Below, piece by piece: positions 5,557 through 58,237 of a stretch of DNA of 64,000 bases. Each line of letters opens with the position of its first letter. Positions within the stretch are counted from its first letter, which is position 1. Below the pieces are notes generated by a model. The model was not told the DNA's origin. It did no database searches and saw only the letters and a list, made by a program, of their open reading frames with translations. A program made the position numbers and the translations under genes. Where the stretch lies: assembly GCA_965202585.1 (NCBI GenBank), contig OZ241833.1, forward strand, positions 43,772,001 to 43,836,000. The letters are read 5' to 3'. The DNA comes from Thalia democratica (lineage: Eukaryota).

Positions 5557-7951
5557 GTTATTGATTGAAATAATATTTAACTGTTTTAAACTTTATTTCT
5601 ATCAAGTCAATAATGTTCAAAATAGTAATATTTTTGTTTAGTTTGTAAAGCATATTTAGAAAACTGTTGTAGCTTGAATTGCAAATTTAGACACCACTCT
5701 ACTTAGTGTTTCGAAAATTCAAGGAAAAAATTAATTACTTTAAGATGATTGTAAAGAAGTTTTGCATTTAAATAAGTCTTGACTTTAATTTTATACATTT
5801 AAAAAATATTATATGTTTTTGAGTTTTTGATTAATTGTAGACAAAATTAAACCAAAACAAAAGATAGAAATAAAGGTTGTTGAAAGTTAAAGTGTATTGT
5901 AAACTAGAAAAATAACAAAACACAAAACTGAAAATTATTTGAATTTAAATTCACAATGTACTAAATATAATTTATCAAATAAGGAAATATTGTACTTGAA
6001 AATATAGTCACTAATTTCCAGTGACTTTTTGACTATAGAATTCTATTTAATTGTCTACTTTTTCTTTGTTTAACTTTTAAACTGTTAAGTTTAGTAAACC
6101 AAAACTTGTTTCTATGGTTTAGCAAAACCTAACATAATTGCCAAATTGATTTTTTTTTTAATATTGTTATACAATATTTTACTTAATATAAGAGCCGAAG
6201 TGTGATAAGATGTTTTCTCTATTTTAAAACGTTTAATATTTTTAATATTAATCCCTAAACTAAAAGAGTAGTATCAAAAGCACATTATAAACGAGTATTT
6301 GGAATAACTAATTTTAAGAAATTTTCATTTCTTGTAGGACTGACATAAACAATAAATTATAAAACATTCGATTTAATTTAAGATTTGTTGTACCAAAATA
6401 CTAGTATAACTTATCTAGGCTATAATTTAAAGGGAAAATTAATAAAGGTGTTTTAAAAAACCTATCGTTAGATTTGTTTTTAAACTTTATAAACGCCTTT
6501 TTTCTTGAGGATATCTCTAATTTTTTATTAAACATTTTAATACAAAATCAAAATTCAAATTTTATAAAATTTCTAAGAAAAATTTGACTGTATAAACGAA
6601 ACATTTTTAACTTAACAGAAATGGACTACACATTTAACTGTAACCGTGGTGTATGACTGGATAACCGAAGGATTTTTTTACACACCAAGTTCATTGAAAT
6701 AAATTTTTTGAGCTCTTTTTTTTTGTGTCCGAAAATCATCTTTTTAACATTGATAGAAAATAACTTTGATCAACGAAGTTTGACTAGTTTATTGTATTTA
6801 TCCTTTACAAAAGCTAAGTTACCAAGTTTTTACTTCACTTTGGTCAGTTGTTTTATAACGTAGAAAACCTTTTTCATATAGTAAAATGATACTTGTATTT
6901 TAAAAATTCACACTAACATACAACAAAAAACAATTCTAGTAATAACTACTTACATTATCAAAATTGCCTGTAAATGGGGTCAAGCAGGCTATTAGTAATT
7001 TAGTGACTAAAAATTAAACCTAAGTTTTATTTGATTTTAAAAAACTGGTATTCTTCTTTTAAAATCGTGTTTAATTTAATTCAACTTAGTTGTATTGAAG
7101 GTTAAGTAAGCTTAAATGTAGAAAACTTTGCAGTTTTTAAGTTTAAAATTAACTCGAAAATTTTAAAACTTATATCAAAATTAAGGCCTGAAGCAACTTT
7201 TAAAAAAATCTTAAAAGTTTTTTTTTCAAAAAATACTCATAAGTATTCTTTCCAATTGGTTTTGTTTTAACTTAACAAAGTAAAAATTCTTTGAATATTT
7301 TTAAACAAAAGTGAATAATATTTTTCTGCTATTCTTACCAAAAGTTCATTGTTTTTTGGAAATATACAGTGTCATTAAGAGTAAAATTTCAAAATACACA
7401 ACTTTAATTTCAACAATATAATTTATAAAGAAAATGATTTTAAAACTTACAATATCTGCAAACTTTCAATAATCTAATAAAGGTGTTTTTTTAAATAGGA
7501 TTGTGATGAGTGCAGTTTTTTCTTTTGAGTTTCAAGAAAATTTGTTCATAAACCAAAAAATATAATATTTAGCTTATGTTATAAGCTTTTATTTTTTATT
7601 GTTATTTTAAAACAAATAAAAAGGGTGGTTATAGAATATTGGCGAGGAATGAGTAATAATGATTTAATATTTACAAAATTTAACACATACTTAATTACTT
7701 TTTATTTTTTATTATAAAATACAAACAAGTAATTTTTGGTAATAGTGTTTAAAAAATGGTAAACAAAGTTATAAGTAAAAAAATTGAAAATTGCTATTAA
7801 ATCAAAGTTTTCTCTCATATTTAGCTACAATAGAAAGTTGATAAAACAATCTGTTACATTATCAAAACTTATGAAAATAATAGACACAAATGATAATTAT
7901 ACTAATATAAATAAACATATACAGTAAAAACAACTGTTAATTATAAAAATT

Positions 7952-8322
7952 CAGGATTGCTAAATGTTTTTGGCTAATTTTTTCCAGGTTTTAAAAACTT
8001 CTATCAGGTTTTTCAAATTACACGTTTTCAGGTATATTTTTAGTTTAAAATTAAGTTTTATGGTAAAAGTTAAACAGTATAACAAAGTTGAAAAGATAAA
8101 GTAATAATTCTTTATATGTGTTTGTTAATATAAAAATTTTTGATGACGAACAACTTTTTTTTATATACACAATATAATTTTGTGTAAAAGCAAGACTTTA
8201 CTACTTAACATGCAAAAGTCGGTTAAAATTTATAGGTTTTTCTAGGTTTTCAGTGATTTTTGTTTAAAGTCCAACTTTTTCAAATTTCAAATTACAGGAT
8301 TTCAGGTTTTTTGGAAACCCTG
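7952..8322. mobile_element. Non-autonomous TIR element of the CAGGGTTGCCA family
   Basis: The ends are caggattgctaa and ttggaaaccctg, with subterminal (tt)ccaggttttt repeats. The flanks aaaatt/caaatt match at 5 of 6 positions. Confidence 0.6.
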
Positions 8323-9268
8323 CAAATTGTACATCTAGTTGACAATTCACAACTGTGGCAATTTCGAAAAATCATAAAGCAGCCATTGTGATTGCCAAAA
8401 TACCTTACACCTTCAGGTGTAATCACTAAGTCATACACTTTATTAAATTATTTTAAATAAAAAATTTTATGTTGAAAAATGTTTTAGATATATCTTATAT
8501 ATCTTTTGTTATATATTATTTTAGATGACGATACTCAATTAATATTGTGTAAGATGGACTAAGAATGATAAATTAGGAAAATGAATAATGCTTAGTGTCA
8601 CTATAAATAGTTTTATTTCTTTTCAGTGACTATATATCAATTCTTAAAAATGTTTCTTGTCCCCTAACAGTAAATTGTTCTTATTTTGTTAATTTTAAAA
8701 CTGTAAAAAATTTTGTAAATTTTGTGGTTGTAATTGCCAACATATCTTAATACTAGGAATGTCAAGTATTTGGTGTTAACCATTTAAGGTGAAAATTATT
8801 AGTTTGACAACCTTAAAATTTCATTTATAGTGTAGTTATAAGCAATTTATAACATGATATTTTTAAAACATTTTTGAATTAGAAATAAGGATATAATGAC
8901 ATGTTAAGTGTAAAATTCACATAGATTTATTTACTTAAAACCTCTTTTTTGAAAAACAATAAGAGTTAAAATTGTTTTGATTTATTGTATTTGAAACAAA
9001 TTAAACTCATTTATAAGGAACTTAAAAATAAAAATATGCCTTAAAATAGTTTTTTTAAAGGTAGTCAACTAAACTAAGCTTTAAGCAAAAGATGATGAAA
9101 AAGTCTGTTGTATAATTTAGACTTGAAAAGTCTATAAACAATAATAAATTTACTTATAAGTTATTTAAATACAAAAAAAAAATTAACAACTGTTCAATCT
9201 GTAAAAGATATTTTATTGGTTTTCTTACACTGGTACTTTAACTATTTTGTCCAACTATTTCTTATAAT

Positions 9269-21338: not shown

Positions 21339-22544
21339 CGTTTATGATGAAAATTCAAACGATCCAACTATCAATGATAAAGTCATTATGAAAACATTAA
21401 ATGAAATTATGATAACTTTGAAACTCTTTGTCGGTATTTAAGTGTTGATGTACAACAGTTCAAAAGTTTGCGTAGCTTGCTCGACAGTTTTGTTGTCAGC
21501 AAAAGAAACAGGTTGATAGTGTTTCACAAAATAAGAAAACAATGTCAGAATTTTGATAAAATTTACGACAAAATTCAAGGAAGACTTACGAGCGCTACTC
21601 TACCAAGCATAGTGATTCAAATATTCGTTTTGAGAACTAAGATGTGGAAAGAAATTCAATATGTAGAAGCACGCATAAAATCTCTAAAGGTCGATGATGA
21701 AATTTAAAGTACTAAAAAGTTGCTTGATCGAATAGTCGAATTTTTATAACAGTTTTATAATAGCAGCGGATTTAGCAGGTCAAAGTTTGCTTTTAATGCA
21801 CAAAGTTCTATTTTGTAATCCAACTGAGTTAACTGAAAATCGTAATTCTGTTTACAGTGAATACAAGACAACTTGAAGTCATCACTTGAAGAACTCAATG
21901 TTGTAATTTCATTAGCATTGATGGAGATGTTAAGTAAAGTATTGTTTTCACTTATTATATAGCTGATATTTTTTTAAGGAACATGATTAAAAATATTCTA
22001 GAATCTATTGAGATTACTTTAAATGTTACCTAAGTTAATGTTTGTAATTTTGAGCCTGAAGCAAAAGACCTAATAAAAAGATAACTGTTTGTTATGTGTT
22101 TTTTATACATACATATAACTTTACTTTGTTGTTTTTTTGTTGGACTTAGTTGAAAATTGTTTATAAGTTTAAGGCTAAATAAACCTTTTGTTGGTCAAAC
22201 TTTAAAAGTACCTTACTATTGTAAATATCTATCAATAAAAAAATTCTGAGTTAGTATTTAAAGAAATCAACTTTATGACCGCTTCTTAGTATTATCAACT
22301 GTGTAGGTTATAGAAAAGTATAGCGTCGCTTTAGCACGGAGTGAAATTATAGCACGGAATGTAAATTTTGCACGTAACACGATTCTTACTTTTTAGTTAG
22401 TAAGTTTCTTAAGAATTAATATCATACTAAATAAGTTGTTCAAAATCGGACTTAAAACAGTGTTTTGGAACAAAAAAGGACCTACATTGATAGACAAGTA
22501 AACTAAACAAGATATGAGAGAAATTAATAACAGTACTCAAAATA

Positions 22545-23270
22545 TATAACAGACAATAAAAGCGCTGATAAGTTTAAGCAAAATATTCAAAACGAAAACT
22601 CAAACAATCCAATAAACAATGGTCTAGACGTTTATACATTAGATTGTCAAACTAAAACTTCAAAACTCTCAGTCAGTAATTAAATGTTGATTTGCAACAG
22701 TTTAAATGTTTGCGTAGCTTTTTAAAAATTATGATGGCATCAAAAGAAACATGTTGAAAGTGTTCAACGAAATAAAATAAACAATGTCAAACTTATGGCG
22801 GAGTTTACGAAAATATTCAAGGAAGGTTTAGGAATATACTTCCACAAAGCATAGTGAACCAAACATTCGTTTTGAAAATCGAGCTTATGGAAAGAAAAGC
22901 AATTTGTGGAATCATGCATAAATACTTTTAAGGTCGGTGATGAAACTGAAAGTACTAATAACTTGATTGATCGAGTAGTCGATTTTTTAAAACAGTTCAA
23001 AATAGCAGCAGACTTAGAGTAGGTTAAAGTTTGTTTTTAATGCATAAACTGCTATTTTCTAATCAAACTGAATTGACTGAAAATTTCATTTCTGTTTATA
23101 ATGAATATATGAAAAATTTGAAGTTGTCACATGAAAAACTTGGCAGCTGTAGTCCCACCAGTATTTGTGATAACGTCATAAGAAGTATTATTCACACAAA
23201 CTTCGTAATTGATATCTTTTTAGGGGGTATTATTAAAAATTTTGCTGGATTTTTTTTAAAATACTTTTAA
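22545..23270 (+). pseudogene. 3'-half fragment of a membrane-anchored family gene (A3, subtype A)
   Basis: It aligns with the C-terminal domain (gttgatttgcaacagtt..., caaagcatagtgaaccaaacattcgttttga...) and has stops and indels. Its 3' flank repeats 22023-22140. Confidence 0.75.
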
Positions 23271-23970: not shown

Positions 23971-26900
23971 TTAATTTTCCTTGATATACTCGAGAATAGC
24001 TTTGCGATGCTTTTCACAAAAGTCAACAACTCCTTCCATCTCCCTCATTTTCTCCTGATCACCACGCAACTTGCTGACGTCATTTTCCAAAAACTCGCCG
24101 AGCTTTTCAACGAAAGACTGCAAGAAATCCGTGCTTTCTTTAAACATCATCCTTTGTTCTTTATCAGCGATGTTGTAGGTGTACACGCAGGAGATCATCA
24201 TGCAGCGGCGGGACTCTCTCAAATTTTTACACGCCTTTTGCAAGAACATTCGCTCGCGGAAGGTGCCGAGTCTTTTGACGTCATCAACTTCCATCTCTTC
24301 GCCATCACCTTCAGCGGTATTTCCGAGCCTCTCGTACACCTCTTCCATGGAGACTTTGCCTTCTTTCTCAATGCTCTTTTTGTGCTCGGCGTACACCCTT
24401 AAGTACTCCGCGAACTGGTCTTCACGTTCACCGTCTTCAGGCCCTTCATCGCTATCCGCGTCGGAGTCGCTCTCTTCCGGTTCTTCAACTTTTTGGCGTT
24501 TGTCCATCCAGTCTTTCATCATCGCGCACGCCAGGGGGTAGTGCGACGGCTGCTTGCACTCGAAGCAAACTTTGTCTCCTGCCGAGCATTGATCTTCGAA
24601 GCGGTCCGCCACTTCAGTTGCTGATTCGTCGCAGCTGGAGTCTGATGAGTACATGTCTTCACGTTCACCGCCTTCAGGCCCTTCATCGCTGTCCGCATCG
24701 GAGTCGCTTTCTTCCGGTTCTTCTTTGCTCGCTACCTTGCGTTCCAACAAGCCTTTCAGATCGGCGCACGCATGGGGGTAGTGCGACGGCTGCGTATCGA
24801 AGTCGCTCTCTTCCAGTTCTTCTTTGCTCGCTACCTTGCGTTCCAACAAGCCTTTCAGATCGGCGCACGCATGGGGGTAGTGCGACGGCTGCGTATCGGA
24901 GTCGCTCTCTTCCGGTTCTTCTTTGCTCGCTACCTTGCGTTCCAACCAGCCTTTCAGATCGGCGCACGCATGGGGGTTGTGCGACGGCTGCGTATCGGAG
25001 TCGCTCTCTTCCGGTTCTTCTTTGCTCGCTACCTTGCGTTCCAACAAGCCTTTCAGATCGGCGCACGCATGGGGGTAGTGCGACGGCTGCGTATCGAAGT
25101 CGCTCTCTTCCGGTTCTTCTCTGCTCGCTACCTTGCGTTCCAACCAGCCTTTCAGATCGGCGCACGCATGGGGGTTGTGCGACGGCTGCGTATCGAAGTC
25201 GCTCTCTTCCGGTTCTTCTTTGCTCGCTACCTTGCGTTCCAACAAGCCTTTCAGATCGGCGCACGCATGGGGGTTGTGCGACGGCTGCGTATCGGAGTCG
25301 CTCTCTTCCGGTTCTTCTCTGCTCGCTACCTTGCGTTCCAACCGGCCTTTCAGATCGGCGCACGCATGGGGGTTGTGCGACGGCTGCGTATCGGAGTCGC
25401 TCTCTTCCGGTTCTTCTCTGCTCGCTACCTTGCGTTCCAACCAGCCTTTCAGATCGGCGCACGCATGGGGGTAGTGCGACGGCTGCGTATCGAAGTCGCT
25501 CTCTTCCGGTTCTTCTCTGCTCGCTACCTTGCGTTCCAACCAGCCTTTCAGATCGGCGCACGCATGGGGGTTGTGCGACGGCTGCGTATCGGAGTCGCTC
25601 TCTTCCGGTTCTTCTCTGCTCGCTACCTTGCGTTCCAACCAGCCTTTCAGATCGGCGCACGCATGGGGGTTGTGCGACGGCTGCGTATCGGAGTCGCTCT
25701 CTTCCGGTTCTTCTTTGCTCGCTACCTTGCGTTCCAACCAGCCTTTCAGATCGGCGCACGCATGGGGGTTGTGCGACGGCTGCGTATCGGAGTCGCTCTC
25801 TTCCGGTTCTTCTCTGCTCGCTACCTTGCGTTCCAACCAGCCTTTCAGATCGGCGCACGCATGGGGGTTGTGCGACGGCTGCGTATCGGAGTCGCTCTCT
25901 TCCGGTTCTTCTCTGCTCGCTACCTTGCGTTCCAACCAGCCTTTCAGATCGGCGCACGCATGGGGGTTGTGCGACGGCTGCGTATCGGAGCCGCTCTCTT
26001 CCGGTTCTTCTTTGCTCGCTACCTTGCGTTCCAACCAGCCTTTCAGATCGGCGCACGCATGGGGGTAGTGCGACAGCTGCGTATCGGAGTCGCTCTCTTC
26101 CGGTTCTTCTCTGCTCGCTACCTTGCGTTCCAACCAGCCTTTCAGATCGGCGCACGCATGGGGGTTGTGCGACAGCTGCGTATCGGAGCCGCTTTCTTCC
26201 GGTTCTTCTCTGCTCGCTACCTTGCGTTCCAACCAGCCTTTCAGATCGGCGCACGCATGGGGGTTGTGCGACAGCTGCGTATCGGAGTCGCTCTCTTCCA
26301 GTTCTTCTTTGCTCGCTACCTTGCGTTCCAACCAGCCTTTCAGATCGGCGCACGCATGGGGGTAGTACGACAGCTGCGTATCGGAGTCGCTCTCTTCCGG
26401 TTCTTCTCTGCTCGCTACCTTGCGTTCCAACAAGCCTTTCAGATCGGCGCACGCATGGGGGTAGTGCGACGGCTGCGTATCGGAGTCGCTCTCTTCCGGT
26501 TCTTCTCTGCTCGCTACCTTGCGTTCCAACCAGCCTTTCAGATCGGCGCACGCATGGGGGTAGTACGACAGCTGCGTATCGGAGCCGCTTTCTTTCGGTT
26601 CTTCTTTGCTCGCTACCTTGCGTTCCAACCAGCCTTTCAGATCGGCGCACGCATGGGGGTAGTGCGACGGCTGCGTATCGGAGTCGCTCTCTTCCGGTTC
26701 TTCTTTGCTCGCTACCTTGCGTTCCAACCAGCCTTTCAGATCGGCGCACGCATGGGGGTAGTGCGACAGCTGCGTATCGGAGTCGCTCTCTTCCGGTTCT
26801 TCTCTGCTCGCTACCTTGCGTTCCAACCAGCCTTTCAGATCGGCGCACGCATGGGGGTAGTGCGACAGCTGCGTATCGGAGTCGCTCTCTTCCGGTTCTT

Positions 26901-27894
26901 CTCTGCTCGCTACCTTGCGTTCCAACCAGCCTTTCAGATCGGCGCACGCATGGGGGTAGTGCGACAGCTGCGTATCGGAGCCGCTCTCTTCCGGTTCTTC
27001 TTTGCTCGCTACCTTGCGTTCCAACCAGCCTTTCAGATCGGCGCACGCATGGGGGTAGTGCGACAGCTGCGTATCGGAGTCGCTCTCTTCCGGTTCTTCT
27101 CTGCTCGCTACCTTGCGTTCCAACCAGCCTTTCAGATCGGCGCACGCATGGGGGTAGTGCGACGGCTGCGTATCGGAGTCGCTCTCTTCCGGTTCTTCTT
27201 TGCTCGCTACCTTGCGTTCCAACAAGCCTTTCAGATCGGCGCACGCATGGGGGTAGTGCGACGGCTGCGTATCGAAGTCGCTTTCTTCCGGTTCTTCTTT
27301 GCTCGCTACCTTGCGTTCCAACCAGCCTTTCAGATCGGCGCACGCATGGGGGTAGTGCGACGGCTGCGTATCGGAGTCGCTCTCTTCCGGTTCTTCTCTG
27401 CTCGCTACCTTGCGTTCCAACCAGCCTTTCAGATCGGCGCACGCATGGGGGTTGTGCGACGGCTGCGTATCGGAGTCGCTCTCTTCCGGTTCTTCTTTGC
27501 TCGCTACCTTGCGTTCCAACCAGCCTTTCAGATCGGCGCACGCATGGGGGTAGTGCGACAGCTGCGTATCGGAGCCGCTTTCTTCCGGTTCTTCTCTGCT
27601 CGCTACCTTGCGTTCCAACCAGCCTTTCAGATCGGCGCACGCATGGGGGTAGTGCGACGGCTGCGTATCGGAGTCGCTCTCTTCCGGTTCTTCTTTGCTC
27701 GCTACCTTGCGTTCCAACCAGCCTTTCAGATCGGCGCACGCATGGGGGTAGTGCGACAGCTGCGTATCGGAGCCGCTTTCTTCCGGTTCTTCTCTGCTCG
27801 CTACCTTGCGTTCCAACCAGCCTTTCAGATCGGCGCACGCATGGGGGTAGTGCGATGGCTGCGTATCAAAGTCGCTTTCTTTGCAACCTCTGCG
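23971..27894 (-). CDS. Ariadne (RBR E3 ligase)-derived reading frame: 32 x 33-aa repeats, half IBR zinc site and Ariadne domain, with no RING1 or RING2. It has no in-frame ATG until 24654 and may be a pseudogene or an internal exon.
   Basis: The C-terminus (EYLRVYAEHKKS...FLQKACKNLRESRRCMMISCVYTY...FLQSFVEKLGEFLEND...DFCEKHRKAILEYI) matches the Ariadne domain pattern of ARIH1/ARI-1. CFECKQPSHYPLAC...W matches the second Zn site of the IBR (C-x2-C-x4-H-x4-C). The frame is open from just after a TAA near 27895-27897. The ORF-track start at 27816 is TTG, and the Met-initiated portion 24654-23971 is 227 aa. Confidence 0.75.
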   Translation of the reverse strand, partial: RRGCKESDFDTQPSHYPHACADLKGWLERKVASREEPEESGSDTQLSHYPHACADLKGWLERKVASKEEPEESDSDTQPSHYPHACADLKGWLERKVASREEPEESGSDTQLSHYPHACADLKGWLERKVASKEEPEESDSDTQPSHNPHACADLKGWLERKVASREEPEESDSDTQPSHYPHACADLKGWLERKVASKEEPEESDFDTQPSHYPHACADLKGLLERKVASKEEPEESDSDTQPSHYPHACADLKGWLERKVASREEPEESDSDTQLSHYPHACADLKGWLERKVASKEEPEESGSDTQLSHYPHACADLKGWLERKVASREEPEESDSDTQLSHYPHACADLKGWLERKVASREEPEESDSDTQLSHYPHACADLKGWLERKVASKEEPEESDSDTQPSHYPHACADLKGWLERKVASKEEPKESGSDTQLSYYPHACADLKGWLERKVASREEPEESDSDTQPSHYPHACADLKGLLERKVASREEPEESDSDTQLSYYPHACADLKGWLERKVASKEELEESDSDTQLSHNPHACADLKGWLERKVASREEPEESGSDTQLSHNPHACADLKGWLERKVASREEPEESDSDTQLSHYPHACADLKGWLERKVASKEEPEESGSDTQPSHNPHACADLKGWLERKVASREEPEESDSDTQPSHNPHACADLKGWLERKVASREEPEESDSDTQPSHNPHACADLKGWLERKVASKEEPEESDSDTQPSHNPHACADLKGWLERKVASREEPEESDSDTQPSHNPHACADLKGWLERKVASREEPEESDFDTQPSHYPHACADLKGWLERKVASREEPEESDSDTQPSHNPHACADLKGRLERKVASREEPEESDSDTQPSHNPHACADLKGLLERKVASKEEPEESDFDTQPSHNPHACADLKGWLERKVASREEPEESDFDTQPSHYPHACADLKGLLERKVASKEEPEESDSDTQPSHNPHACADLKGWLERKVASKEEPEESDSDTQPSHYPHACADLKGLLERKVASKEELEESDFDTQPSHYPHACADLKGLLERKVASKEEPEESDSDADSDEGPEGGEREDMYSSDSSCDESATEVADRFEDQCSAGDKVCFECKQPSHYPLACAMMKDWMDKRQKVEEPEESDSDADSDEGPEDGEREDQFAEYLRVYAEHKKSIEKEGKVSMEEVYERLGNTAEGDGEEMEVDDVKRLGTFRERMFLQKACKNLRESRRCMMISCVYTYNIADKEQRMMFKESTDFLQSFVEKLGEFLENDVSKLRGDQEKMREMEGVVDFCEKHRKAILEYIKEN
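24700..27880. repeat. 99-bp tandem repeat (minisatellite), 32 units, about 60% GC
   Basis: The marker cagatcggcgcacgcatgggg recurs from 24757 to 27826, and 3069 = 31 x 99, so there are no indels. One unit counted by hand has 59 of 99 G+C and 11 CpGs. Confidence 0.98.
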
Positions 27895-28757
27895 TTAAGT
27901 ACTATGATAAACCACCTCTGGTGTCTTGTTAGAAAAATTGTTCCTTTAAGCTTGTTTTATGGTTATACCAGTAAATCAGTCAAAGCTAAGGTTGCTGATC
28001 TTTAAATCATAAAACAAATCAGTAAAACGCCTAAACATTTAGAAAAAAAACAATGAGTTACCTAATCGTCATGTTTAATCTAATGAGAAGTAAGATTTAG
28101 AAGAACTTATTGGAAGTAATTACATGTTTTTTTTTTATCCTAGACTGCAGTCATTCATTTCATATTTAAAACCGCAAGAACAATGGACTAGCGACAAAGA
28201 TTACTTAGAGGCAAGAGAAATACTTAATTACATGAGTGTTGTCAATGACGCTGCCAAAAGAGAGCTAAATTGTTCCGCGATTTTATAATTTCGTCGAGAA
28301 ATGAAGACACGTATCAAAATAATTTATAATTTATCAAGGAGGATAGGAAGCAACTACCAAACCTCAGAATTATGAATAGTTCAAGAAAGAAGATATTGTA
28401 ATTCGTTTTACTTTCGAGTTTAATAAAATACTTCAATTCTCAAACGAATAATTGTGGTTATTGAATTTTTTTTAAGCGATGACGATCTGAATAAATGTTT
28501 AAAAATCTTTTTGAGAAATAAGTAGTACAAGTTACTTAATAACAAAACTTAAAAAAAGTTTTCAGAAAATAAAAATAAAATCGACCTTTTCAAGTATACC
28601 GAAATAAAGCAAAATTTTTGAAATTAATTAGCTCCAACATGCTTAAAGCGAATAAATTTTTTTGTTCTCTCTATTTATGTGAATCCCCTAAACCTACAAA
28701 AATGGATAAAGCAAAGTTCTTAAGCTTTCATTTTTGAGGGGCAACAGATGCACCCTA
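27882..28757 (+). mobile_element. 3' part of a decayed hAT-superfamily (hATm-like) transposon
   Basis: It encodes NHLWCLVRKIVPLSLF and SVVNDAA.R, which are degenerate hAT transposase C-terminal motifs. The right terminus ...gatgcacccta resembles a TAGGGTG TIR. It is paralogous to 48712-49572. Confidence 0.7.
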
Positions 28758-30011
28758 ATGTATACAAAGCCACAGCCACATATAAGGAATACATTTATTA
28801 AAGGGAAGTTTCTTTCAAAACAAGATGGCAACAAAACAAGTACAGCTTCCTCAAGAAATTACAAACAACAGTCCCGGCTAAAGCCACCTTATCAAATAAT
28901 ACTCAAAATTAAGTCGCAAATGATATTTAAAATCAAACTGCTCAGTACCCAGAATGGCAGACAATTTCTATATACGATATCTAGAAAGAATTGCTACTGT
29001 AGAAACGGACAGAGATAAAGCGATTTATGTAAGTAAAGAACTAACTTCCGCGTGCCCTTGTTTTATATCTAGTTATTTGTATTTCTTATTTATTTTTTGT
29101 CATTTTGTAAAGCTATTATTATTTTTGTTATCCTAACTTTTTTTTAATCATTATTGTGAGTTTTTTTTTGAAGTGTTTTTTGATTTTGACGAGTGTTTTT
29201 GCTTACTTTTCATTTTAGAATTAATCAATGTTTTTTATAATTACTTAGATACATAATTACAATGAGGAATAAACTACAAATTAATTAATTTCACGTTACT
29301 TGATCTTACGACAATATTTGTGTTATTTTATTTTTACCTATAAAACTCTGAGGATACTTTTAGGAGTAACAGTGTCAGATAAAGTAACAATTGTCGAATA
29401 AAGTTATAACAAAGTTAATATACTTTTTTTTTTTTTGCACATAAAAGCTCTGATTGTAAATTTTACTACCGATCAAAGCTATTTAAGTTTAAATCTATAG
29501 ATTAACTTTTTGTGTACTTTTCTTATACTAAAATGCAAAAAGTTTTAACTTAAATGTTGCTTTTTAGGTACCTAAAACGTTTTAAGTTAAAACACTTTTA
29601 CCTTACTTAGTTTATTTGTAACTTGACATTTAGAGATCTTTATACAGAATAATTAAAAAATCTTAACTTATAAAAGCTTGTTTGAGTATAAAGCTTTGCA
29701 ACGAAAATGACCACTACATTGGTTTTATTTCAAGCATTAATATAAAAAGTAAGCTGACAACAACAAGTACATAAAACCTACTATAAAAATATATACAAAA
29801 TAATAATAGACTTTTTCAAAAGAATTAAAAATATTCAATTTTAATTAGTTTGGAAGATATTTTGTCACTATGTTTTAAGAAGGAATACATATTTTCTAGA
29901 ATATTACAAACATAACATTTAAAAAAAAACAAATGATGTAGCTTTTTTCAAGTGTTTGAAAACTAAACATATATATATATATATATATACATATTAAACA
30001 TGTGTTTAGTG

Positions 30012-30250
30012 CTGAGTTTCCCAAAGTGGGCCGTGACAGATACTCAGGGGGCAACGAGCAGCAAAGGGGTAAGATCGGGGCCATGAGGTCATAATTTGAA
30101 ACTTACACTAGATATTCTTGAGTTGCAGATGAAGAGAAAAAAGGTTTTTGGTGTTTTTTATCGTAGTTTATAAGCAATCTTGTTGAAGGGGCCCATGGCT
30201 TTTTCAACTTCTTTAAGGGGGCTATTTGCAAGAAACTTTGGGAAACCCTG
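30012..30250. mobile_element. hAT-superfamily MITE (239 bp)
   Basis: The ends are ctgagtttcccaaag and ctttgggaaaccctg, with an exact 8-bp TSD gtttagtg. The site is empty in the paralog at about 41560-41580. Confidence 0.85.
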
Positions 30251-30692: not shown

Positions 30693-32588
30693 ATGATAAA
30701 ACTTTCATTTAAACTTGATGTTAGTTCGACCAAATTGCTTATTGGATTTGTTGGAGTGTCAGCCACGTTGGGTGCTCTTTACTACTTGTCTCATCAAAAC
30801 AGAACAACCAAATCTTTAAAGAGTGACGACGAAATATCCACAGGAGAAAGAAAAAAATTTTGTAGGTTGAATGGAAATAAATTAGGGTTAGTAAGTCAAA
30901 ATAAAATCAAAAATAAAGAAAATCATAACGTGAAAGTTGTTTCAAATATTTGCGAATTGCATCCTGAAAATAATCATCACAAAACAAACTTTGCATGTGA
31001 AGGCATTCAGGCATTGGATAATGATCCACAATCACTTAACACTGAAGCAACACAAAACAAGTTAAAGATGGTCATTTTGGATAAATCTGATGTAGGATCA
31101 CATGTTGAAAATAATAACAATAGTCAAACTAACGATGATAAACTAGAAGTAAATAATTCTCCTATGAGTGAAAATCCAGACGAAACAAGACAAAAAGAGC
31201 ACAATGAAACCAATGACGCTCCTAATAGTCGTGAAAACAAAAATATTGTTGGAAGAAAAGAAGAAACTACATTGGCAGAAGAATCAGCAGAAAAAAATAT
31301 CGGAGAAGCTAATAATCCTCAAAAAGATACCAAAGGTAATAAAAATGTTGGTAAAGTAAACCGTGTTGTTCAAAATGGAAACTCAAACAATAAATCTCCT
31401 GCGAATAAAAAAGGAGAGAAATCAAAAACAAAGGAGAAAATTAAAGCCATTGATGCTCATAAAACTCGTTAACACGAACATGTTTTTGAAACAAAAAAAA
31501 GATCTATATTGGTAGAAAATTCAATAAATTTTGGAGAGGTTCAAAATTTGGATAACAACAGACAACTTAATACCGAAGCAACAATTATACAAAACAAGGA
31601 TGAAATGGTCAATTCGGATTATTTTGATGAAGGATCACAGGTTAAGAATATTGACAATAATAAAACTAACGATTATAAACCAGAAGTGAATAAATCTCCT
31701 GTGAATGAAAACCCAGACGAAACAGAATCAAAAGAGCTCAATGGAACTAATGATGCTCATAATAGTTGTGAAGACAAAAAGATTGCTGGAACAAAAAAAG
31801 AACTCCTATTGGCAAAAAAATCAACTGAAAAAGATATAGGAGAAGCTACTGATCCCCAAAGAGATACCAGAAACAACAAAAGTGTTGATAAACATAATCA
31901 AAATGTTAAAAATGAAAATTCTAACAAAAAAGAAAGCGAACAAGTCCCGTCTAATATTGACTATTGTTCATACAATTTGAAAAAAACAATTCAGTATCTA
32001 TTTGTCAATTTGCAGCAGTTCAAAAAATTACGTAGTTTGCTCAACGATCACAAGGGCAGCAGAGCAACGAGATTTAAAAGTTTTAAAAACATCAAAGTTT
32101 TCTGTCAGACTTATGGTGAAGTTTACGACGAAATTCAAGAATGTGTAGAGCACTCTGATCTGCGATTTTTAGTAAACCAGATATTCTGTTTAAAAACAAA
32201 TCTGTGGAAAGAAGTAAGATCTGTAGAAGCATCCAGCAATAACTCAATAGGTAAAAACAATTTTAAAGTGACTGAAAATACTAAAAACTTGGTTGATGGA
32301 ATAATTGAATATTTAGAACAGTTTAAAATAGCAGTATGCTTCGCCGGTCAATGCTTATTATTTTATAAATTGAAACATATTGACCAGGTAGTTCAAGTTA
32401 ATGAACAACAAGATATCAGGTCGACTTTTAGTAAATATAAGTACAACTTGAAATTTTCGCTTGAAAAGCTTGAGAATTCTAAAGCATTTAGTGAGGTTAA
32501 TGATGTGCGAAACGACATATTAGATATAATTAAGTTAACTAAATATTCTTTTAAATGGTTTGAAGAAAATTTTGTTGGATATGCTTGA
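30693..32588 (+). pseudogene. Membrane-anchored family gene (A4, subtype B, long form) split by one in-frame stop
   Basis: The ORFs 30693-31472 and 31509-32588 are in the same frame. The TAA at 31470-31472 aligns with GAA in copy A5 (aaaactcgtTAA vs aaaagtcgtGAA). It would otherwise be 631 codons without other lesions. Confidence 0.85.
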
Positions 32589-36142: not shown

Positions 36143-38023
36143 ATGATAAAACTTTCATTGAAACTTGATGTTAGTTCGACCAAGTTGCTTATTGGATTTG
36201 TTGGAGTGTCAGCTACATTGGGTGCTCTTTACTACTTGTCTCATCAAAATAAAACAACCAAATTTTTAAAGAGTGACGACGAAATATCCACAAGAGTGAA
36301 AGAGAAATCTGATATGTTGAATGGAAATAAAGTACGGTCAGAAAAGCATAACGCGAAAGTTGTTTCACATATTTGTGAATTGCATGCTGAATATGATCAT
36401 CACATAACAAACTGTGTACGAGAAGGCAATAAGGCTTTGGAAAGTAATTGGCAATCACCTAACACTGAAGCAACATTGACACAAAACAAGGAAAAAATTA
36501 TCATTTTGGATGAATCTGATGTAGGATCACATGTTGAAGATAATAACAATAGTAAAACTAAAGATGATAAACCAGAAGGGAATAAATATTCTGTGAATAA
36601 AAAACCAGACGATATAAGTCAAAAAGAGCCCAATGTATCCAATGATGCTCCTAATAGTCGTGAAGACGAAAATAGTGTTGGGAGAAAAGAAGAAGCTACA
36701 TTAGCAGTAGAATCAGCAGAAAAAGATATCGGAGAAGCTAATAATCCGAAAGAAGATACCAAAGACAATAAAAATGTTGATAAAGTAAACCATTTTGTTC
36801 AACATGAAATCACAAACAATAACTCTTCTGTAAGTAAGAAACCAGATAAATCAAGAGCAAAGGAACAAAGTGAAGCTGATGATGCTCATAAAAGTCGTGA
36901 AGACAAAAATGGTTTTGGAACAAAAAAAAGATCTAAATTGGCAGAAGATTCAATAAACTTTGAAGAGGTTCAGACTTTTAATAGCAATCCACAACTGCTT
37001 GATACCGAAGCAACAATCACAGGAAGCAAGGACAAAAGGGTCAGTTTGGATCATTTTGATGAAGGATCACAGGTTAAAAATAAAAGCAGTAATAAAATTA
37101 ACAATGACAACCAACAAGAAAATGAATCTTCAGTTAATGGAAAACCAGTTGAACTCAGAACAAATGAGCGTAATGAAACTAATGATCTACACAATAAATG
37201 TGGAGACGAAAATACTGTTGGAGCAGAAAAAGAACCTATAATGGCAAAAGAATCAACTGCAAAAGATACAGAAGAAGCTAATGATCTTAAAAAAGATAAC
37301 AAAGACAATAAAAGTATTGATAAAGAAAATCAAGCTGTTCAAAATGAAAACTCAAACGGTCCAAATACCATTGATCAAGCCGTTGGTACAATAAATTGTC
37401 ATTTTGAAAACTTTAAAATTCTTATTCAGTATTTAAATCTTGATGTACAACAGTTCAAAAGTTTGCGTAGCTTACTCGACAGTTATGTTGGCAACAAAAA
37501 AAACAGGTCGAGAGTGCTCAACAAAATAAAAAAACTGTGCCAGAATTATGGCGAAATTTACGAAAATATTCAAGGAAACTTTATGTACGCTAGTCTACAA
37601 AGCGTAGTGAACCAAATATTCGTTTTGAGAACAAATCTGTGGAAGGAAGTTCAATGCGTGGAAAAGCAAATCAATAATTCAAAAGTCGCTGATGAAATTG
37701 AAAGTACTAAAGTGTTAGTTGATCGAATAATTGAACTTATAGAACAGTTTAAATCAGCAGTAGACTTAGCGGTTAAAAGTTTGTTTTTAATGCGTAAATG
37801 GATATGTTTTAGTGAAACTAATGATCGTAAGGATTTTGTTTCGGCTTATAGCAAATACAAAGACAGTTGGAAGGTTTTACTGGAAAAATTTGACACGTGT
37901 AAATACTTGAGTCTGACTGATGATATAAAAATTAGTATTACTTTCATTGTAACTCTAATTGATTATTTTTCTAGCAATTATCAAAATAGTATTTCTATTT
38001 TACTACAAATTTACTTAAGTTGA
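36143..38023 (+). CDS. Uncharacterised N-terminally membrane-anchored protein, 626 aa (A5, subtype A, long form)
   Basis: Intact ATG-to-stop ORF. The hydrophobic segment LLIGFVGVSATLGALYYL is followed by basic residues, two N/K/E/D/S-rich repeat modules and a helical C-terminal domain. There are multiple paralogs in the window. No known family was recognised. Confidence 0.85.
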   Translation: MIKLSLKLDVSSTKLLIGFVGVSATLGALYYLSHQNKTTKFLKSDDEISTRVKEKSDMLNGNKVRSEKHNAKVVSHICELHAEYDHHITNCVREGNKALESNWQSPNTEATLTQNKEKIIILDESDVGSHVEDNNNSKTKDDKPEGNKYSVNKKPDDISQKEPNVSNDAPNSREDENSVGRKEEATLAVESAEKDIGEANNPKEDTKDNKNVDKVNHFVQHEITNNNSSVSKKPDKSRAKEQSEADDAHKSREDKNGFGTKKRSKLAEDSINFEEVQTFNSNPQLLDTEATITGSKDKRVSLDHFDEGSQVKNKSSNKINNDNQQENESSVNGKPVELRTNERNETNDLHNKCGDENTVGAEKEPIMAKESTAKDTEEANDLKKDNKDNKSIDKENQAVQNENSNGPNTIDQAVGTINCHFENFKILIQYLNLDVQQFKSLRSLLDSYVGNKKNRSRVLNKIKKLCQNYGEIYENIQGNFMYASLQSVVNQIFVLRTNLWKEVQCVEKQINNSKVADEIESTKVLVDRIIELIEQFKSAVDLAVKSLFLMRKWICFSETNDRKDFVSAYSKYKDSWKVLLEKFDTCKYLSLTDDIKISITFIVTLIDYFSSNYQNSISILLQIYLS

Positions 38024-41967: not shown

Positions 41968-43193
41968 ATGATAAAAGTTTCATTGAAACTTGATTTTAGC
42001 TCAACCAAGTTGCTTCTTGGGTTTGTTGGAGTGTCAGCTACATTGGGTGCTCTTTACTACTTGTCTCATCAAAATAAAACAAGCAAGTATTTCAAAAGTG
42101 ACGACGAAATATCCACAGGAGAAAGAGAAAAACCTTGTAAGTTGAATGATAAAAAAGTAGGGTTAGTAAGTCAAAGTATGAAAGTTGTTTCAAATATTAG
42201 TGAATTGCATGCTGAAAATGTTCATCACAATACAAACTTTACATGTGAAGGAATTCAGACATTGGATAACAATTCGCAATCACTTAACACCGAAGCAACA
42301 ATCACTCAAAACAAGGGAAAAACAGTACATTCGGATGGATCTAATGCAGGATCACAGGTTGAAAACAATAACAATTCTAAAACTAACGATAACAAACCAG
42401 AATGAAATAAACCTCTGTGAATGAAAAAAAATTAAGCCCAGAACAAACAAAACACAATAAAACTACTGGTCCTCAATAAGATACCAAAGACAATAAAAGT
42501 GTTGATATACATAATCAAAATGTTCAAAATGAAAACTCTATTAAGATAGAAAGCGAACAAGACCCAGATAATCTTAATTATTTTTAAATAGTTTAGAAAT
42601 TCTTTGTCTGTGTATAAATGTCAATCTGCAACAGTTCAAAAGCTAATGTAGTTTGCTCAATGATCATAAAGGGAACAAAACAAATAGAAGGAAAATTTTT
42701 AATAAAATTAAAGTAAAAGTCAGACTTTCGGCACAATTTACGACAAAATTCAACAATGTCTATCGTACCCTAATCTGCGAATTTTAGTAAACCAGATATT
42801 CAATTTTAGAACATTTTTGTGGAAAGAAGTAAAATCTGCAGAAGCATCAAGCAATAACAATTTTCAAGCGACTGAAAATACTAAAAAGTTGGTTGATGGG
42901 ATAGTTGAATATTTAAAACAGTTTAATATAGCAGTAGGCTTCACTATTCAAAGCTTATTATCATCATATCAAATGGTTCATAATGACCAGGCTGATTAAG
43001 CTAATGTAGAACAAGATTTGAGCTCGGCTTTTAGTAAATACAAAATCAGTTTGAAGTCAACGCTTGAAAAGCTTAATAACTCTAAAGCGTTTAGTGAGGT
43101 TAATAAAGTCCGAAATGACGTTATAGACATAATTATTTTAAAAAAAATGTAAAAAATACAATGTAAAAAAAAAATTTTTTTGGATATGTATGA
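41968..43193 (+). pseudogene. Membrane-anchored family pseudogene (A6, subtype B, short)
   Basis: The N-terminus is intact, followed by a premature TGA at 42403-42405, further stops and frameshifts. The fragment WKEVKSAEASSNN is at 42817-42999. Confidence 0.85.
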
Positions 43194-51099: not shown

Positions 51100-52626
51100 G
51101 TTTAGTGGTACTATTACAAAATCGCTTATTTATAACCAATATTTTACAATTATGTTATTAAAAACTTGTCAACTAACTTAAACAATACTAGTTTTAAATT
51201 TTCTTCCCTAAAGAGTTAGTCTTTAAAGAATTTCTGTGCAAGTGCTAGTCATAAGTTTATTTAACTCTAAATATATAAGTAATTAAAATGAAAATAAATT
51301 AAACTAACTTATATAAGTTCATACTTGAAATATTTTTCATCTACACAATAATATGCTTTATAAACAATAAGACTAAAAATTTTAAACCACTAAAACTTAA
51401 ACTAGTTATAAATACAACTTAGATACAATAATTTGACATATAAAATTTTAGATTATCAAAATTAATGTATATCACTAAATTATGTAATTTTGTGATTTTT
51501 ATTCAATTCAAATTTTTTTAGCTATTTACAAGTCTACTTGCAATGATAAAACTTTCATTTAAACTTGATGTTAGTTCGGGCAAATTGCTTATTAGGTTTG
51601 TTGGAGTGTCAGCTACATTTGGTCTTCTTTACTACTTGTCTCATCAAAATAAAACAAGCAAATTTTTAAAGAGTGGCGACGAAATATCCACAATAGTGAA
51701 AGAAAAATATAGTAGGTTGAATGGAAATAAAGCAGGGTCTGTAAATCATAACGTGAAAGTTGTTTCAAATTTTTGTGAATTGCATGCTGAAAATGATCAT
51801 CACAAAACAAACTTTGAATGTGAAGGCATTCAGACATTGGAAAATGATCAACAATCACCTAACACTGAAGCAACATTGACACGAAACAAGGAAAAAATGG
51901 TCATTTTGGATGAATCTGGTGTAGAATCAGAGGTTGAAAATAATGATACCAATAAAACTAACGATGACAAATCAGAAGAAAATAAAACTCATGTAAATGA
52001 AACCCACACAAAGCAAGACAAAAAGAGCTCAATGGAATCAATGATGCTCTTAATAATAGTGAAGACAAAAATATTGATGGAAGAAAAGAAGAACCCCCGT
52101 TGGCAAAAAAATCAACTGAAAAAGATACAGGAGAAGCTAGTGATCCTCAAAAATCAACCAGAGACAACAAAAGTGTTGATAAAGGAAATCAAGTTGTTCA
52201 AAATGAAAACTCTCACTAAATAGGAAGCGAAAAAGACCCAGCTGATTTTGATTGTTGTTTATTTAACTTTAAAATTTTTAGTCAGTATATAAAAGTTGAT
52301 TTGCAGCAGTTCAAAAAATTACGTAGATTGCTCAACGATCACAAGGGCAACAAAAAATAAGATTGAAAAGCTTTAAGAATATTAAAGTAAAATGTCAGAC
52401 TTTCGGTGAAGTTTACGAAGGAATTCAACAATGTTTATCGTACTGTGATCTGCGAAATTTAGTAAACCATTTATTTACTTTGAGAAAAAATCTATGGAAA
52501 AAAGTACAATCTGTAGAAGCATCCAGCAATAACTCAATAAGTAAAAACAATTATATAGTTACTGAAAGTACTAAAAAGTTGGTTGATGGAATAATCGAAT
52601 ATTTAGAACAGCTTAAAGTAGCAGTG

Positions 52627-55580: not shown

Positions 55581-57785
55581 TATGCTTCGCTGGTCAAAGC
55601 TTATTATTTTATAAAGTGAAACGTATTGACCATGCAGTTAAATTTAATAAACAACAAAATCTTTGTTCGGTTTTTAGTGAATACAAAGACAACTTGAAAT
55701 CTTCGCTTGAAAAACTTAAGAACTCTAAAGCGCTGAGTGTGGTTTACGATGTCGGAAACGACGTGATAGATATAATTAATTTGACTTGTTCTTTTTTTAC
55801 ATGGTATGAAGTAACTTTTGTTAAATATGTTTGAAAGTACTTTGTGAAATACTTTTGTGAGCTTTATATCATTAATTTATTGAAAACTATTGTATTATTT
55901 GTAAGTTAGTTTTTTGTTTTTTATATGTTTGTGTTTAAATTGTGTTTGTTGTAACTGTGTTTTTATTTTTATTTAATATAAAAAATCTCCGATATTTAAA
56001 AAAAATTTACTTGTTTTGAATAAGAAGTTTTAGAATAAACTAATTTAAAACAGCTTCATTGTGCTTATTTCTCAGTGTTATTGAAAGTTATCTGTTACCA
56101 CAAAGTATCTAACTGATAATCATTAAGTCATTAGAAGAACTCTAGAATATTTATCATACTAACATTAACATCAATAGTAGTTAAAAATAATAAAGTACAT
56201 CATATAAATTTTGAAAACTTTTTTTTTAAACGAAAAGATGTTTCTTGAAGCTTGATACCCCTTAGTTTAAACAAATAGATTTAAAAATTCGATACAATAG
56301 TTTCTGTAGAATTTTATTTTTATGTTCATAACTTGGAGCACATTTACAAAGCGTTTGTTAAAAATATTATCTATAAAAATGAATCTATTAAAACATTTAT
56401 TCAATAGCAATATAGCAATTAATTAGTTTAAAAAAGCATATTTAACGTAAATTTTAAAAACTCTGTATATCATCAACATTGAATGTGTAAAAGCTAATTT
56501 TAACTACTTAATACAATGTATGACGTAAACACGTCCATTTTTTTAGACACGTCGACTTCACAACAATATGCTTTTTAAATAATAATTATATAAATTAAAT
56601 TACTGATTGTTATTACTTTTGATGTTTATTTCTGATTTTCGGAAGACTAAAGTTTTTTTTGTCGTTTAGTCAAAAAGATTGTGATTAATAAAAATACCAG
56701 AGATCTATAACAGTTTATATTTTTTAACATACTGGCAACTAGTGTTAGATTGAGCAATAATTAAAGGTACTAAAGTTTTCATCTATTATTTAGCATATAG
56801 TCACTTTAATATCATGTTACTGTGATAAATAAAAACACACTATACATAGTTAGTGGTACTTTACTCCATTTCTTATACTTAAAGTATATTTATGGTTAGT
56901 AATTTAAAATTTTTGCAAATTCTGATGTGGTTTAGTTTTACTTATAAATTAATTTTTAGTTACACTACTTGCACTCCTTAGTGTAACATTTTTATAAAAA
57001 AATATTAAATTTTTAAAACAAACGTTAGGTGTTAAGGGAAAATTTAAATTTTTGAAAAATAATCAAAACACTAGCTGTGTATTTCCTTAAAAAAAAAAAA
57101 AACTATATATAAACTATGACTTCATTAACCATCAAAATAAAAGTTATTAAATTGAAAATAAAAAAAACTCACTTTATTCATATATTCTGTTAAAAGTTTA
57201 TAATATGTTATTATGCTAAACAAACACATGTTTTACTTAGTTATACTTTACTCTAATTCTTATACTTAAAATATGATTAACAAATTTATAAAAAAATATA
57301 TATTTTATGGTTAAGTTTTATTAATGGAATTAACTTATATTGTTTATATTATATATTGTATAATTTAAAAAAAATTATAAATCATTTTATTCAATGTTAA
57401 AATAAAAAAGATAAAATTTGTTATTGTAGAAAAAAACTAAGTACATTAATATTTACCTTTATAATAATATATAAACAAATAGATTTTATAAGTTCATTAG
57501 AAGTCAGAATAAAAGTTATAACGTTGAAAAAAATAAAAACTCACTTTGTTTTGTGTTTAAAGTGCATTAGAAACTTAATAAGTTGCTAATTATCTACATT
57601 ATTTACCATACATTAAAACTTTAAGTATTTGTTTATATTCACGAAATCCTGTTTTATTAATATATAAATTGTTTTAAAATAGCCTATATTCAGTATAAAT
57701 GTTACTAAAATCTTTCCTTAAATCTGAAAAAATTTTTTTTTTTTTCAATTTAAAACACTTTTATCTATTTACAAGTCTACTTGCA

Positions 57786-58110
57786 ATAATAAAGCTTTCA
57801 TTTAAACTTAATGTTAGTTCGACAAAGTTGCTTATTTGGTTTGTTAGAGTGTCAGCTACATTGAGAGCTCTTTTTTACTTGTCCCGTCAAAATAAATCAA
57901 AAAAATCTTTAAAAAGTTTTGACAAAATACCCACAAAAAATCAAAATTCTGGTAGGTTGAATGGAAATAAAGTAGGGTTAGTAATTCAAAATATGGAAAT
58001 TGTTTCGGATATTAGTAAGTTGCATGCTGAAAATGATCATCAAAAAACAAACTTTGCATGTGAAGGAATTCAGGCATTGGATAATGATCCACAATCACAA
58101 ATTTTTGTAT
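57786..58110 (+). pseudogene. 5' fragment of a membrane-anchored family gene (A8), tandem duplicate just upstream of A9
   Basis: ATG is mutated to ATA and the upstream acceptor AG to AT. The anchor is disrupted by charged residues (WFVRVSATLRAL). Homology stops at DNDPQSQ. Confidence 0.8.
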
Positions 58111-58237
58111 ATAAATTGTTCCAAACTAATTTAATAAAATATAAACACTTTAAAAACTTTTAAATATTAGGGTTTTTGTTTAAAATATTTTTTTAATCAA
58201 TTTAAAGCACTTTTAGTTGTATATAAGTTTATTTGCA

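Follow-up and report, generated by a model that had tools for sequence, protein, structure and literature searches.

A RING-less Ariadne derivative in Thalia democratica carries a probably untranslated minisatellite made of copies of its own IBR tail

The window analysed here is a stretch of 64,000 nucleotides from contig OZ241833.1 of Thalia democratica, in which one block stands out by its base composition. GC content is 56–58% between positions 24,001 and 28,000 and 21–31% in the rest of the window (in 2-kb steps), with flanks of about 25%. The block holds a minus-strand frame at 23971–27894, which begins at 27894 and runs for 1307 codons without a stop. In translation, this frame consists of 32 units of 33 amino acids, in perfect register and with a constant spacing of 33 residues, followed by an acidic linker, by CFECKQPSHYPLAC together with AMMKDWMDK, by a second acidic linker, and by a helical tail that ends in IKEN and a stop codon. 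The segment that follows the array, MYSSDSS...CFECKQPSHYPLACAMMKDWMDK, stands between the first and second acidic linkers, upstream of the 148-residue helical tail. An original prediction, made from the sequence alone, had proposed this order of 32 units, acidic linker, piece of an IBR domain, acidic linker, and Ariadne domain, and it is upheld by the translation and by Tandem Repeats Finder, which reports a single array at 24697–27881 with a period of 99, 32.2 copies, 96% matches, 0% indels, and a score of 5873. The array has a GC content at third codon positions (GC3) of 0.69 and the tail one of 0.59, compared to 0.19–0.33 in eight neighbouring open reading frames (ORFs).

Read along the minus strand, on which all of these features lie, the locus begins at its upstream edge (27882–27897), where an in-frame TAA (27897–27895) precedes four non-repeat codons (27894–27883); the DNA upstream of the array has a GC content of about 25–35%. 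The array of 32 tandem 99-bp units then extends over 24697–27881, as delimited by Tandem Repeats Finder, a listing of the units, and read depth. In the gene's frame, each unit encodes the last His and Cys of an IBR zinc knuckle, the helix that follows the IBR, and an acidic linker. A second copy of the acidic linker, ADSDEGPEGGERED, recognized from direct repeat D7 and a nucleotide alignment, bridges the array and a 227-amino-acid ORF at 24655–24696. This ORF (MYSSDSS...) is opened by the first in-frame ATG of the whole open frame (24652–24654, codon 1081). It contains the IBR remnant at 24490–24567, which is made up of a C-x2-C-x4-H-x4-C knuckle (24567–24526) and the post-IBR helix AMMKDWMDKRQK and was located with the Pfam IBR profile and an alignment to ARIH1. 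The single-copy remnant keeps all four zinc ligands, and the repeat units only the His and last Cys. Next follow the acidic linker VEEPEESDSDADSDEGPEDGERED at 24418–24489, which in alignment A1 lies at the place of RING2 in full-length relatives, and the 148-residue Ariadne domain from QFAEYL to IKEN at 23974–24417, which was assigned by phmmer, an AlphaFold2 model, Foldseek, and the ratio of nonsynonymous to synonymous substitution rates (dN/dS). The frame closes with the TAA stop codon of the tail ORF at 23971–23973, and its C-terminus, ILEYIKEN-stop, is identical in the relative P0040.

The Pfam IBR profile matched the remnant with an E-value of 0.0076, at profile positions 34–65 of 65 and below the gathering score. 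The Pfam Ariadne model did not match the tail, no Pfam RING match was found in the tail or the whole frame, and a word-index protein search found nothing. A HMMER search over 1.8 billion representative sequences returned 38 matches with E-values down to 2.5e-19, including full RING-between-RING (RBR) proteins of about 500 amino acids with Pfam RING, IBR, IBR_1/2, and Ariadne domains. Searching the PDB with phmmer identified human ARIH1 (5udh, E = 2.4e-6), with query residues 163–258 corresponding to ARIH1 residues 451–545 in the Ariadne domain, while a second, colinear match paired query residues 50–86 with the C-terminus of the IBR (ARIH1 residues 293–328). P0005 and P0008, among others, have IBR tails to which the remnant also aligned. 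AlphaFold2, run with a 34-sequence alignment, produced a model with a predicted local distance difference test score (pLDDT) of 81.7 and a predicted template modelling score of 0.75, in which the Ariadne domain mostly scored above 90, the IBR remnant 78–92, and the post-IBR helix 86–92; this model superseded one from the single sequence, which was useless at a pLDDT of 48. When it was compared to the PDB with Foldseek, the best 14 matches were all ARIH2, ARIH1, or CUL9, and the best fold match was 7b5s_H, the Ariadne domain of ARIH1 bound to CUL1-RBX1 (template modelling scores 0.63/0.66, root-mean-square deviation 2.6 Å). The predicted Ariadne domain thus withstood both the homology and the fold comparison. 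Taken as sequence evidence, the matches support homology between the CCHC piece and the IBR's C-terminal half, and between the tail and the Ariadne domain.

Two other assignments were considered and rejected. Weak matches to nucleocapsid/Gag proteins and to the knuckle protein P0027 raised the option of a retroviral-type zinc knuckle, but the match of the CCHC piece extends into the IBR-specific helix, and its order relative to the Ariadne domain is that of full-length relatives. Matches of the whole frame to At5g52880_ARM, Tae4, ANAPC2, Spc7, and other Pfam families are sums of 32 weak repeat matches, of which no single stretch passes by itself.

In alignment A1, the exact interval between IBR tail and Ariadne domain lacks the RING2 block of P0005, P0008, P0013, P0014, and P0016, as it also does in P0040 and P0001. 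No RING1, UBA-like domain, or RING2 was found in the 64 kb; tblastn with five full-length relatives found the tail only, and no match anywhere in the 64 kb to their residues before about 230. Among the features of RBR ligases in the Ariadne subfamily, the C-terminal Ariadne domain is therefore present at the locus, and RING1, a complete IBR with two zinc sites, and a RING2 with catalytic Cys are missing. As RING1, the UBA-like domain, and RING2 are all absent from the window, any product cannot be an RBR ligase, which agrees with the earlier claim that the product of this locus would be unable to ligate ubiquitin.

The same RING-less layout, without an array, was found in P0040 (246 amino acids, 59–62% identical) and P0001 (243 amino acids). 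The 3′ flank, including an AATAAA, is common to the locus and to L003, the contig that encodes P0040. A maximum-likelihood tree built on the Ariadne domain unites the RING-less sequences (P0040, P0001, P0039, P0004, and others) in one clade with support of 100/100; this clade nests, at 100/99, with the full-length proteins P0005, P0009, and P0053, which make up a lineage-specific group. The locus has the hallmarks of this clade: an IBR tail joined to the Ariadne domain, a deleted RING2, and a charged residue at the equivalent of ARIH1 Phe430. We are very confident that it belongs to a family of RING-less Ariadne derivatives. The original prediction knew of no described protein with this architecture; with array-less, RING-less relatives forming a clade with the locus, that claim no longer holds. 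In the literature, no Ariadne-only family was found described, and searches of JGI metagenome contigs with the protein or the RING-less alignment as query found no relative. The family contigs carry GC-rich ORFs with sharp edges in AT-rich flanks, and those with a named source are marine metagenome DNA from Tara Oceans (PRJEB4352), which is silent on expression. A horizontal or viral origin was considered on account of the high GC content, and is not needed, as the whole family, full-length members included, is GC-rich within AT-rich flanks.

Other copies vary in their state of preservation. L004 and L005 have stops and frameshifts in the IBR remnant, while their Ariadne part is open. A Tara contig carries a decayed full-length member of the subfamily (L007, positions 1–903), whose IBR and RING2 can still be read although a frameshift and stops interrupt them, and in which the catalytic motif reads GGYNRM in place of GGCNHM. 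A second kind of Ariadne-only ORF was found at positions 85–594 of L006. It encodes 169 amino acids, begins at the first Ariadne helix without an IBR remnant, and has AT-rich DNA with stops in all frames just upstream. This ORF falls outside the RING-less clade, keeps Leu at the Phe430 equivalent as well as the C-terminal W-E-F motif, and may be an independent truncation, such as a 5′-truncated copy.

Compared with L003, its nearest relative, the tail showed purifying selection, with a dN/dS of 0.235 in the N-terminal and remnant part (74 codons) and of 0.39 in the Ariadne domain (147 codons), at a dS of about 0.73, so that much of the divergence between the two happened under constraint. Its 227 codons contain no stop or frameshift, and no residue invariant across the RING-less clade has been replaced (alignment A3). 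At the equivalent of ARIH1 Phe430, the locus has Lys, and every RING-less member has Lys, Glu, or Asp; nearly all full-length relatives have Leu, Ile, or Phe. The equivalent of Glu431 is kept in RING-less members and that of Glu503 in most of them, and the locus has both. In ARIH1, Phe430 is the residue of the switch helix that secures RING2 in the autoinhibited state, and the Ariadne domain binds neddylated cullin-RBX (PMC7904520). According to the summary in PMC3817463, the isolated HHARI Ariadne domain, supplied in excess in vitro, partly inhibits the reactivity of an HHARI from which this domain has been removed (Duda 2013), and this trans-inhibition requires F430, E431, and E503. A charged Phe430 position is what a long evolution without a RING2 partner would be expected to produce. 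Because the Phe430-type residue is lost in the RING-less members, trans-inhibition of RING2 in other ligases is disfavoured; the loss bears on that activity only, and says nothing on binding to cullin-RBX.

The array can be traced to the gene itself. The repeat had been described as a copy of the IBR tail plus linker, and indeed a base-by-base alignment joins the last unit and linker to the remnant and the linker behind it. In this nucleotide alignment, the last unit and the remnant are identical over their first 13 nucleotides, and about 70 nucleotides encoding EEPEESDSDADSDEGPE-G/D-GERED are about 94% identical, while the unit end TQP-SHYP mirrors the KQP-SHYP of the single copy. Direct repeat D7 pairs 24418–24463 with 24655–24700 at 93% identity and a spacing of 237 nucleotides. 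A contig from a marine metagenome run encodes CFECKQPSHYPLACA followed directly by ADLKGLLERKVASKE, so that the helix as spelled in the unit occurs in a relative as an ordinary, single-copy variant. This anatomy fits two nested in-frame duplications, one of 237 nucleotides and then one of 99 nucleotides, the latter of which was amplified.

The units have a mean pairwise identity of 97%, with 11 variable sites among 31 units, and the array contains many distinct variants; at one end, in units 1–4, they alternate with a period of 198 bp. One variable site is synonymous in the gene's frame and 10 are nonsynonymous. With 11 sites only, neutrality was not rejected (P = 0.31), whereas an omega of 0.2 or less (P = 0.0017) and an omega of 0.4 (P = 0.034) were, so the neutral-looking array lacks the constraint found for the tail. 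In the consensus unit, four of the six reading frames have no stop, and a unit of 99 nucleotides keeps phase automatically, which makes the openness of the frame uninformative. An ATG-started ORF on the plus strand over the array (24772–28005) was also considered, and discarded as a by-product of open antisense frames, as four to six of the 11 variable sites are synonymous in it, without clear constraint. Read depth was taken from Logan contigs of two runs of the same organism, X1 and X2, in which the contig that cycles back by 99 nucleotides has a word depth of 1161 and 837, respectively, and an exact single-copy contig beside the gene one of 28 and 24.6. The ratio corresponds to about 34–41 copies, compared to 32 in the window. 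Array depth is 0 in the run of a related organism, B, and a metagenome relative looks single-copy; the array is young and local. The depth in X1 and X2 speaks against another large array at some other place in the genome, and a locus that is a truncated copy of an intact, array-bearing parent is therefore disfavoured.

Whether the array is translated depends first on a start codon. The open frame at 23971–27894, which had been presented as an ORF, is real, but it has no ATG from the TAA at 27895–27897 to codon 1081 and is not initiable: none of the 1080 codons upstream of 24654–24652 is an ATG, and the TAA closes the frame 13 codons above the first whole unit. The array does contain 34 out-of-frame ATGs, all in one other frame, each of which opens a five-codon ORF (MRAPI-stop); as a 5′ leader, it would strongly hinder translation of the downstream ORF through these 34 short upstream ORFs. 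The N-terminal Met region of the family (M-x-x-D-x-x-M-x-N/D-A-S-D-S) and its 5′ flank, positions 1–101 of L003, are unmatched in the window. Comparison of the 5′ regions of four paralogs with 27882–29400 gave a best score of 34 against a shuffle maximum of 33, over 22 nucleotides about 130 nucleotides above the array, and no GC-rich, exon-like island was found within 8 kb upstream. An ATG with a purine at position −3 (24654–24652) stands right after the array. A translated tandem repeat would be recognized by an in-frame ATG and by synonymous variation, and the array offers no such ATG and one synonymous site against 10 nonsynonymous ones. The contigs of the sequencing runs that were found cover intergenic DNA as well as the gene, and so behave as DNA. 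A protein of 32 repeats, the product originally envisaged, is not supported, given the missing start codon, the missing 5′ end of the family, the neutral-looking variation, and the occurrence of the array only in the X1 and X2 runs. On balance, we infer that the array is an untranslated, recently expanded, coding-derived minisatellite that displaced the start of the gene.

Several points weigh against this interpretation. X1 and X2 may be the assembly's own sample, so that the support from depth is perhaps not independent. A candidate splice acceptor (cag), preceded by a branch-point-like tacttaac, lies at the very upstream edge of the array, and an upstream exon bearing an ATG is possible because native genes of Thalia democratica have introns. 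An unbroken frame over 3.2 kb is also expected of a translated repeat, and 11 variable sites give the neutrality test little power; a translated repeat under diversifying selection would produce the same pattern. In the tail, moreover, the 13 listed differences from the closest contigs in other runs, a small and selected sample, comprise 11 nonsynonymous and 2 synonymous ones, which hints at relaxed or diversifying evolution among recent copies and could mean recent decay of the tail too. If the whole frame were translated after all, via an upstream exon or an unconventional start, the result would be a multivalent decoy or scaffold of about 1,300 amino acids for cullin-RING/ARIH complexes. 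The 1307 uninterrupted codons in phase with the Ariadne ORF, the possible acceptor, the real copy number, and the unit itself, a structured piece whose helix reaches a pLDDT of 86–92 in the single-copy model, would all suit such a protein, which is nevertheless improbable: besides the absent in-frame ATG and the TAA above the first whole unit, its relatives are single-exon ORFs whose conserved N-terminal Met region is missing here, no exon-like island of high GC content precedes the array, all but one of the 11 variable sites change the amino acid, an open frame means little when four of six are open, and the array is absent in organism B and apparently single-copy in the metagenome relative. 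Such a product would be strongly acidic, with 32 post-IBR helices, each with a His-x2-His-x-Cys motif, ahead of the Ariadne domain. Having arisen within a single species, it would bind cullin-RING/ARIH assemblies, or metal ions, multivalently and without catalysis.

The locus could also be dead as a whole, tail included, as a 5′-truncated duplicate or retrocopy of a functional RING-less master gene whose 227-codon ORF has not decayed so far. We regard this as unlikely, though less so than translation of the whole frame. It would account for the missing family promoter, 5′ untranslated region, and start region; decaying copies are common in the family (L004, L005, L007); the differences from close relatives are mostly nonsynonymous (11 versus 2); and the dN/dS below 1 against L003 could predate the copy, having accrued in the lineage of the master gene. 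Yet the 227 codons of the tail are intact, all residues invariant in the RING-less clade are kept, and the ATG directly after the array stands in its purine (−3) context. Simple retroposition is further opposed by the absence of a poly(A) tract after the AATAAA, beyond which the similarity to a paralog in X1 extends for at least 170 nucleotides. Least probable by far is an assembly artefact, that is, a collapsed or over-expanded repeat or a chimeric join in the array or at its junctions, which the original prediction had named as a way in which it could fail. Units of 99 bp at 97% identity are hard to assemble, but the short-read depth of about 34–41 copies is in line with the 32 assembled, the 11 variable sites, the many unit variants, and the 198-bp alternation are not expected from collapse, and the junction at 24655–24700 is a diverged (93%) rather than an identical copy.

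Under the minisatellite interpretation, the locus would have arisen as follows. It is one copy of a lineage-specific, intronless, GC-rich family that goes back to an Ariadne-type RBR ligase. Lost in this family are the UBA-like domain, both RINGs (RING1 and RING2), and the first half of the IBR; it has retained an N-terminus rich in Ser and Asp, the CCHC knuckle that forms the second zinc site of the IBR together with the helix behind it, an acidic linker, and the four-helix Ariadne domain. In the copy at this locus, a 237-nucleotide block was presumably duplicated in frame, after which a 99-nucleotide segment of the upstream copy (from K/TQP-SHYP to ESDSD) would have been amplified to 32 tandem units by unequal exchange. 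The array now borders unrelated AT-rich DNA, and the start codon, N-terminus, and 5′ flank of the family are gone. The only ATG-initiated product is then a predicted Ariadne-only protein of 227 amino acids (24654–23974), and expression of this ORF from a new start site appears about as probable as a silenced or crippled copy. For the family proteins, our best guess is that they act as non-catalytic competitors or adaptors through the cullin-RBX-binding surface of the Ariadne domain; trans-inhibition of RING2 is a less likely mode. The decoy function originally suggested for the product of this locus is likewise inferred.

The rest of the window carries several further features. A tandem family of at least five ORFs lies on the plus strand (30693–32588, 36143–38023, 41968–42405, 51543–52223, and 57699–59566). 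These ORFs encode 145 to 626 amino acids, several seemingly truncated, and share an N-terminus, MIKLSFKLDVSSTKLLIGFVGVSATLGALYYLSHQN, that resembles a membrane anchor, as well as Asn/Lys/Glu-rich repeats and a conserved C-terminal part; they have no Pfam match. Fragments of the C-terminal part occur at 21414–21478 and 22656–22720. A minus-strand ORF of 654 amino acids at 3561–5525 matches the PARP catalytic domain (E = 1e-8) and has a host-like GC3 of 0.26. At 22282–22375, word depth reaches about 7000–8800 in three runs, which come from two organisms, and 120 in the run from the metagenome, compared to a few hundred in the surrounding DNA; an 18-nucleotide tandem repeat in this high-depth bin (22330–22374) looks like a very high-copy repeat common to related species. 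An island of about 41% GC with strong GC skew, at 30020–30200 in DNA of 20–27% GC, could be a small repeat element; scans of the window for tRNAs and Rfam families, this island included, gave no match. Finally, upstream of the array, where GC content is slightly raised, the plus strand, opposite to that of the array, holds a short ATG-started ORF of 60 amino acids at 28954–29136 that starts with MADNFYIRYLERIATVETDRDKAIYV and may represent an exon from an unrelated gene.

Without neddylated cullin-RING ligases as partners, Ariadne RBR ligases do not work, and the Ariadne domain serves them both as autoinhibitor and as docking module. A natural family that keeps only the Ariadne module would constitute a test of whether cells tune cullin-RING activity by free Ariadne domains. 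The family found here has evolved under purifying selection and lacks the residue that clamps RING2. The locus itself shows a fragment of a zinc-binding domain turning into a minisatellite, and in doing so probably disabling or re-starting a gene.

Its closest counterparts, P0040 and P0001, resemble the locus in their Ser/Asp-rich N-terminus, CCHC remnant, acidic linker, Ariadne domain, and C-terminus, but have a conserved N-terminal Met region, no 99-bp array, and a length of 243–246 amino acids. With ARIH1/HHARI and ARIH2/TRIAD1, the locus shares an Ariadne helical domain that is homologous by sequence and predicted fold, as well as the second zinc site of the IBR and the helix that follows. 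Unlike these ligases, it has no acidic/UBA-like region, RING1, first IBR zinc site, or RING2 with catalytic Cys; the Trp-containing C-terminal tail of ARIH1 is missing as well, and, unlike ARIH1, its product could neither bind an E2 through RING1 nor form a ubiquitin thioester. The isolated HHARI Ariadne domain, as presented in the summary cited above, is likewise an Ariadne domain in the form of a separate polypeptide, whereas the natural RING-less proteins no longer have a hydrophobic residue of the Phe430 type and carry an IBR knuckle remnant and acidic linkers. The array, in turn, resembles coding minisatellites (variable-number tandem repeats in or near genes) in a unit length that is a multiple of three, a very high identity between units, a higher-order alternation, and presence or absence between close relatives. 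It differs from them in that the expanded unit is a recognizable fragment of a zinc-binding domain, and in that the array displaced the start of the gene.

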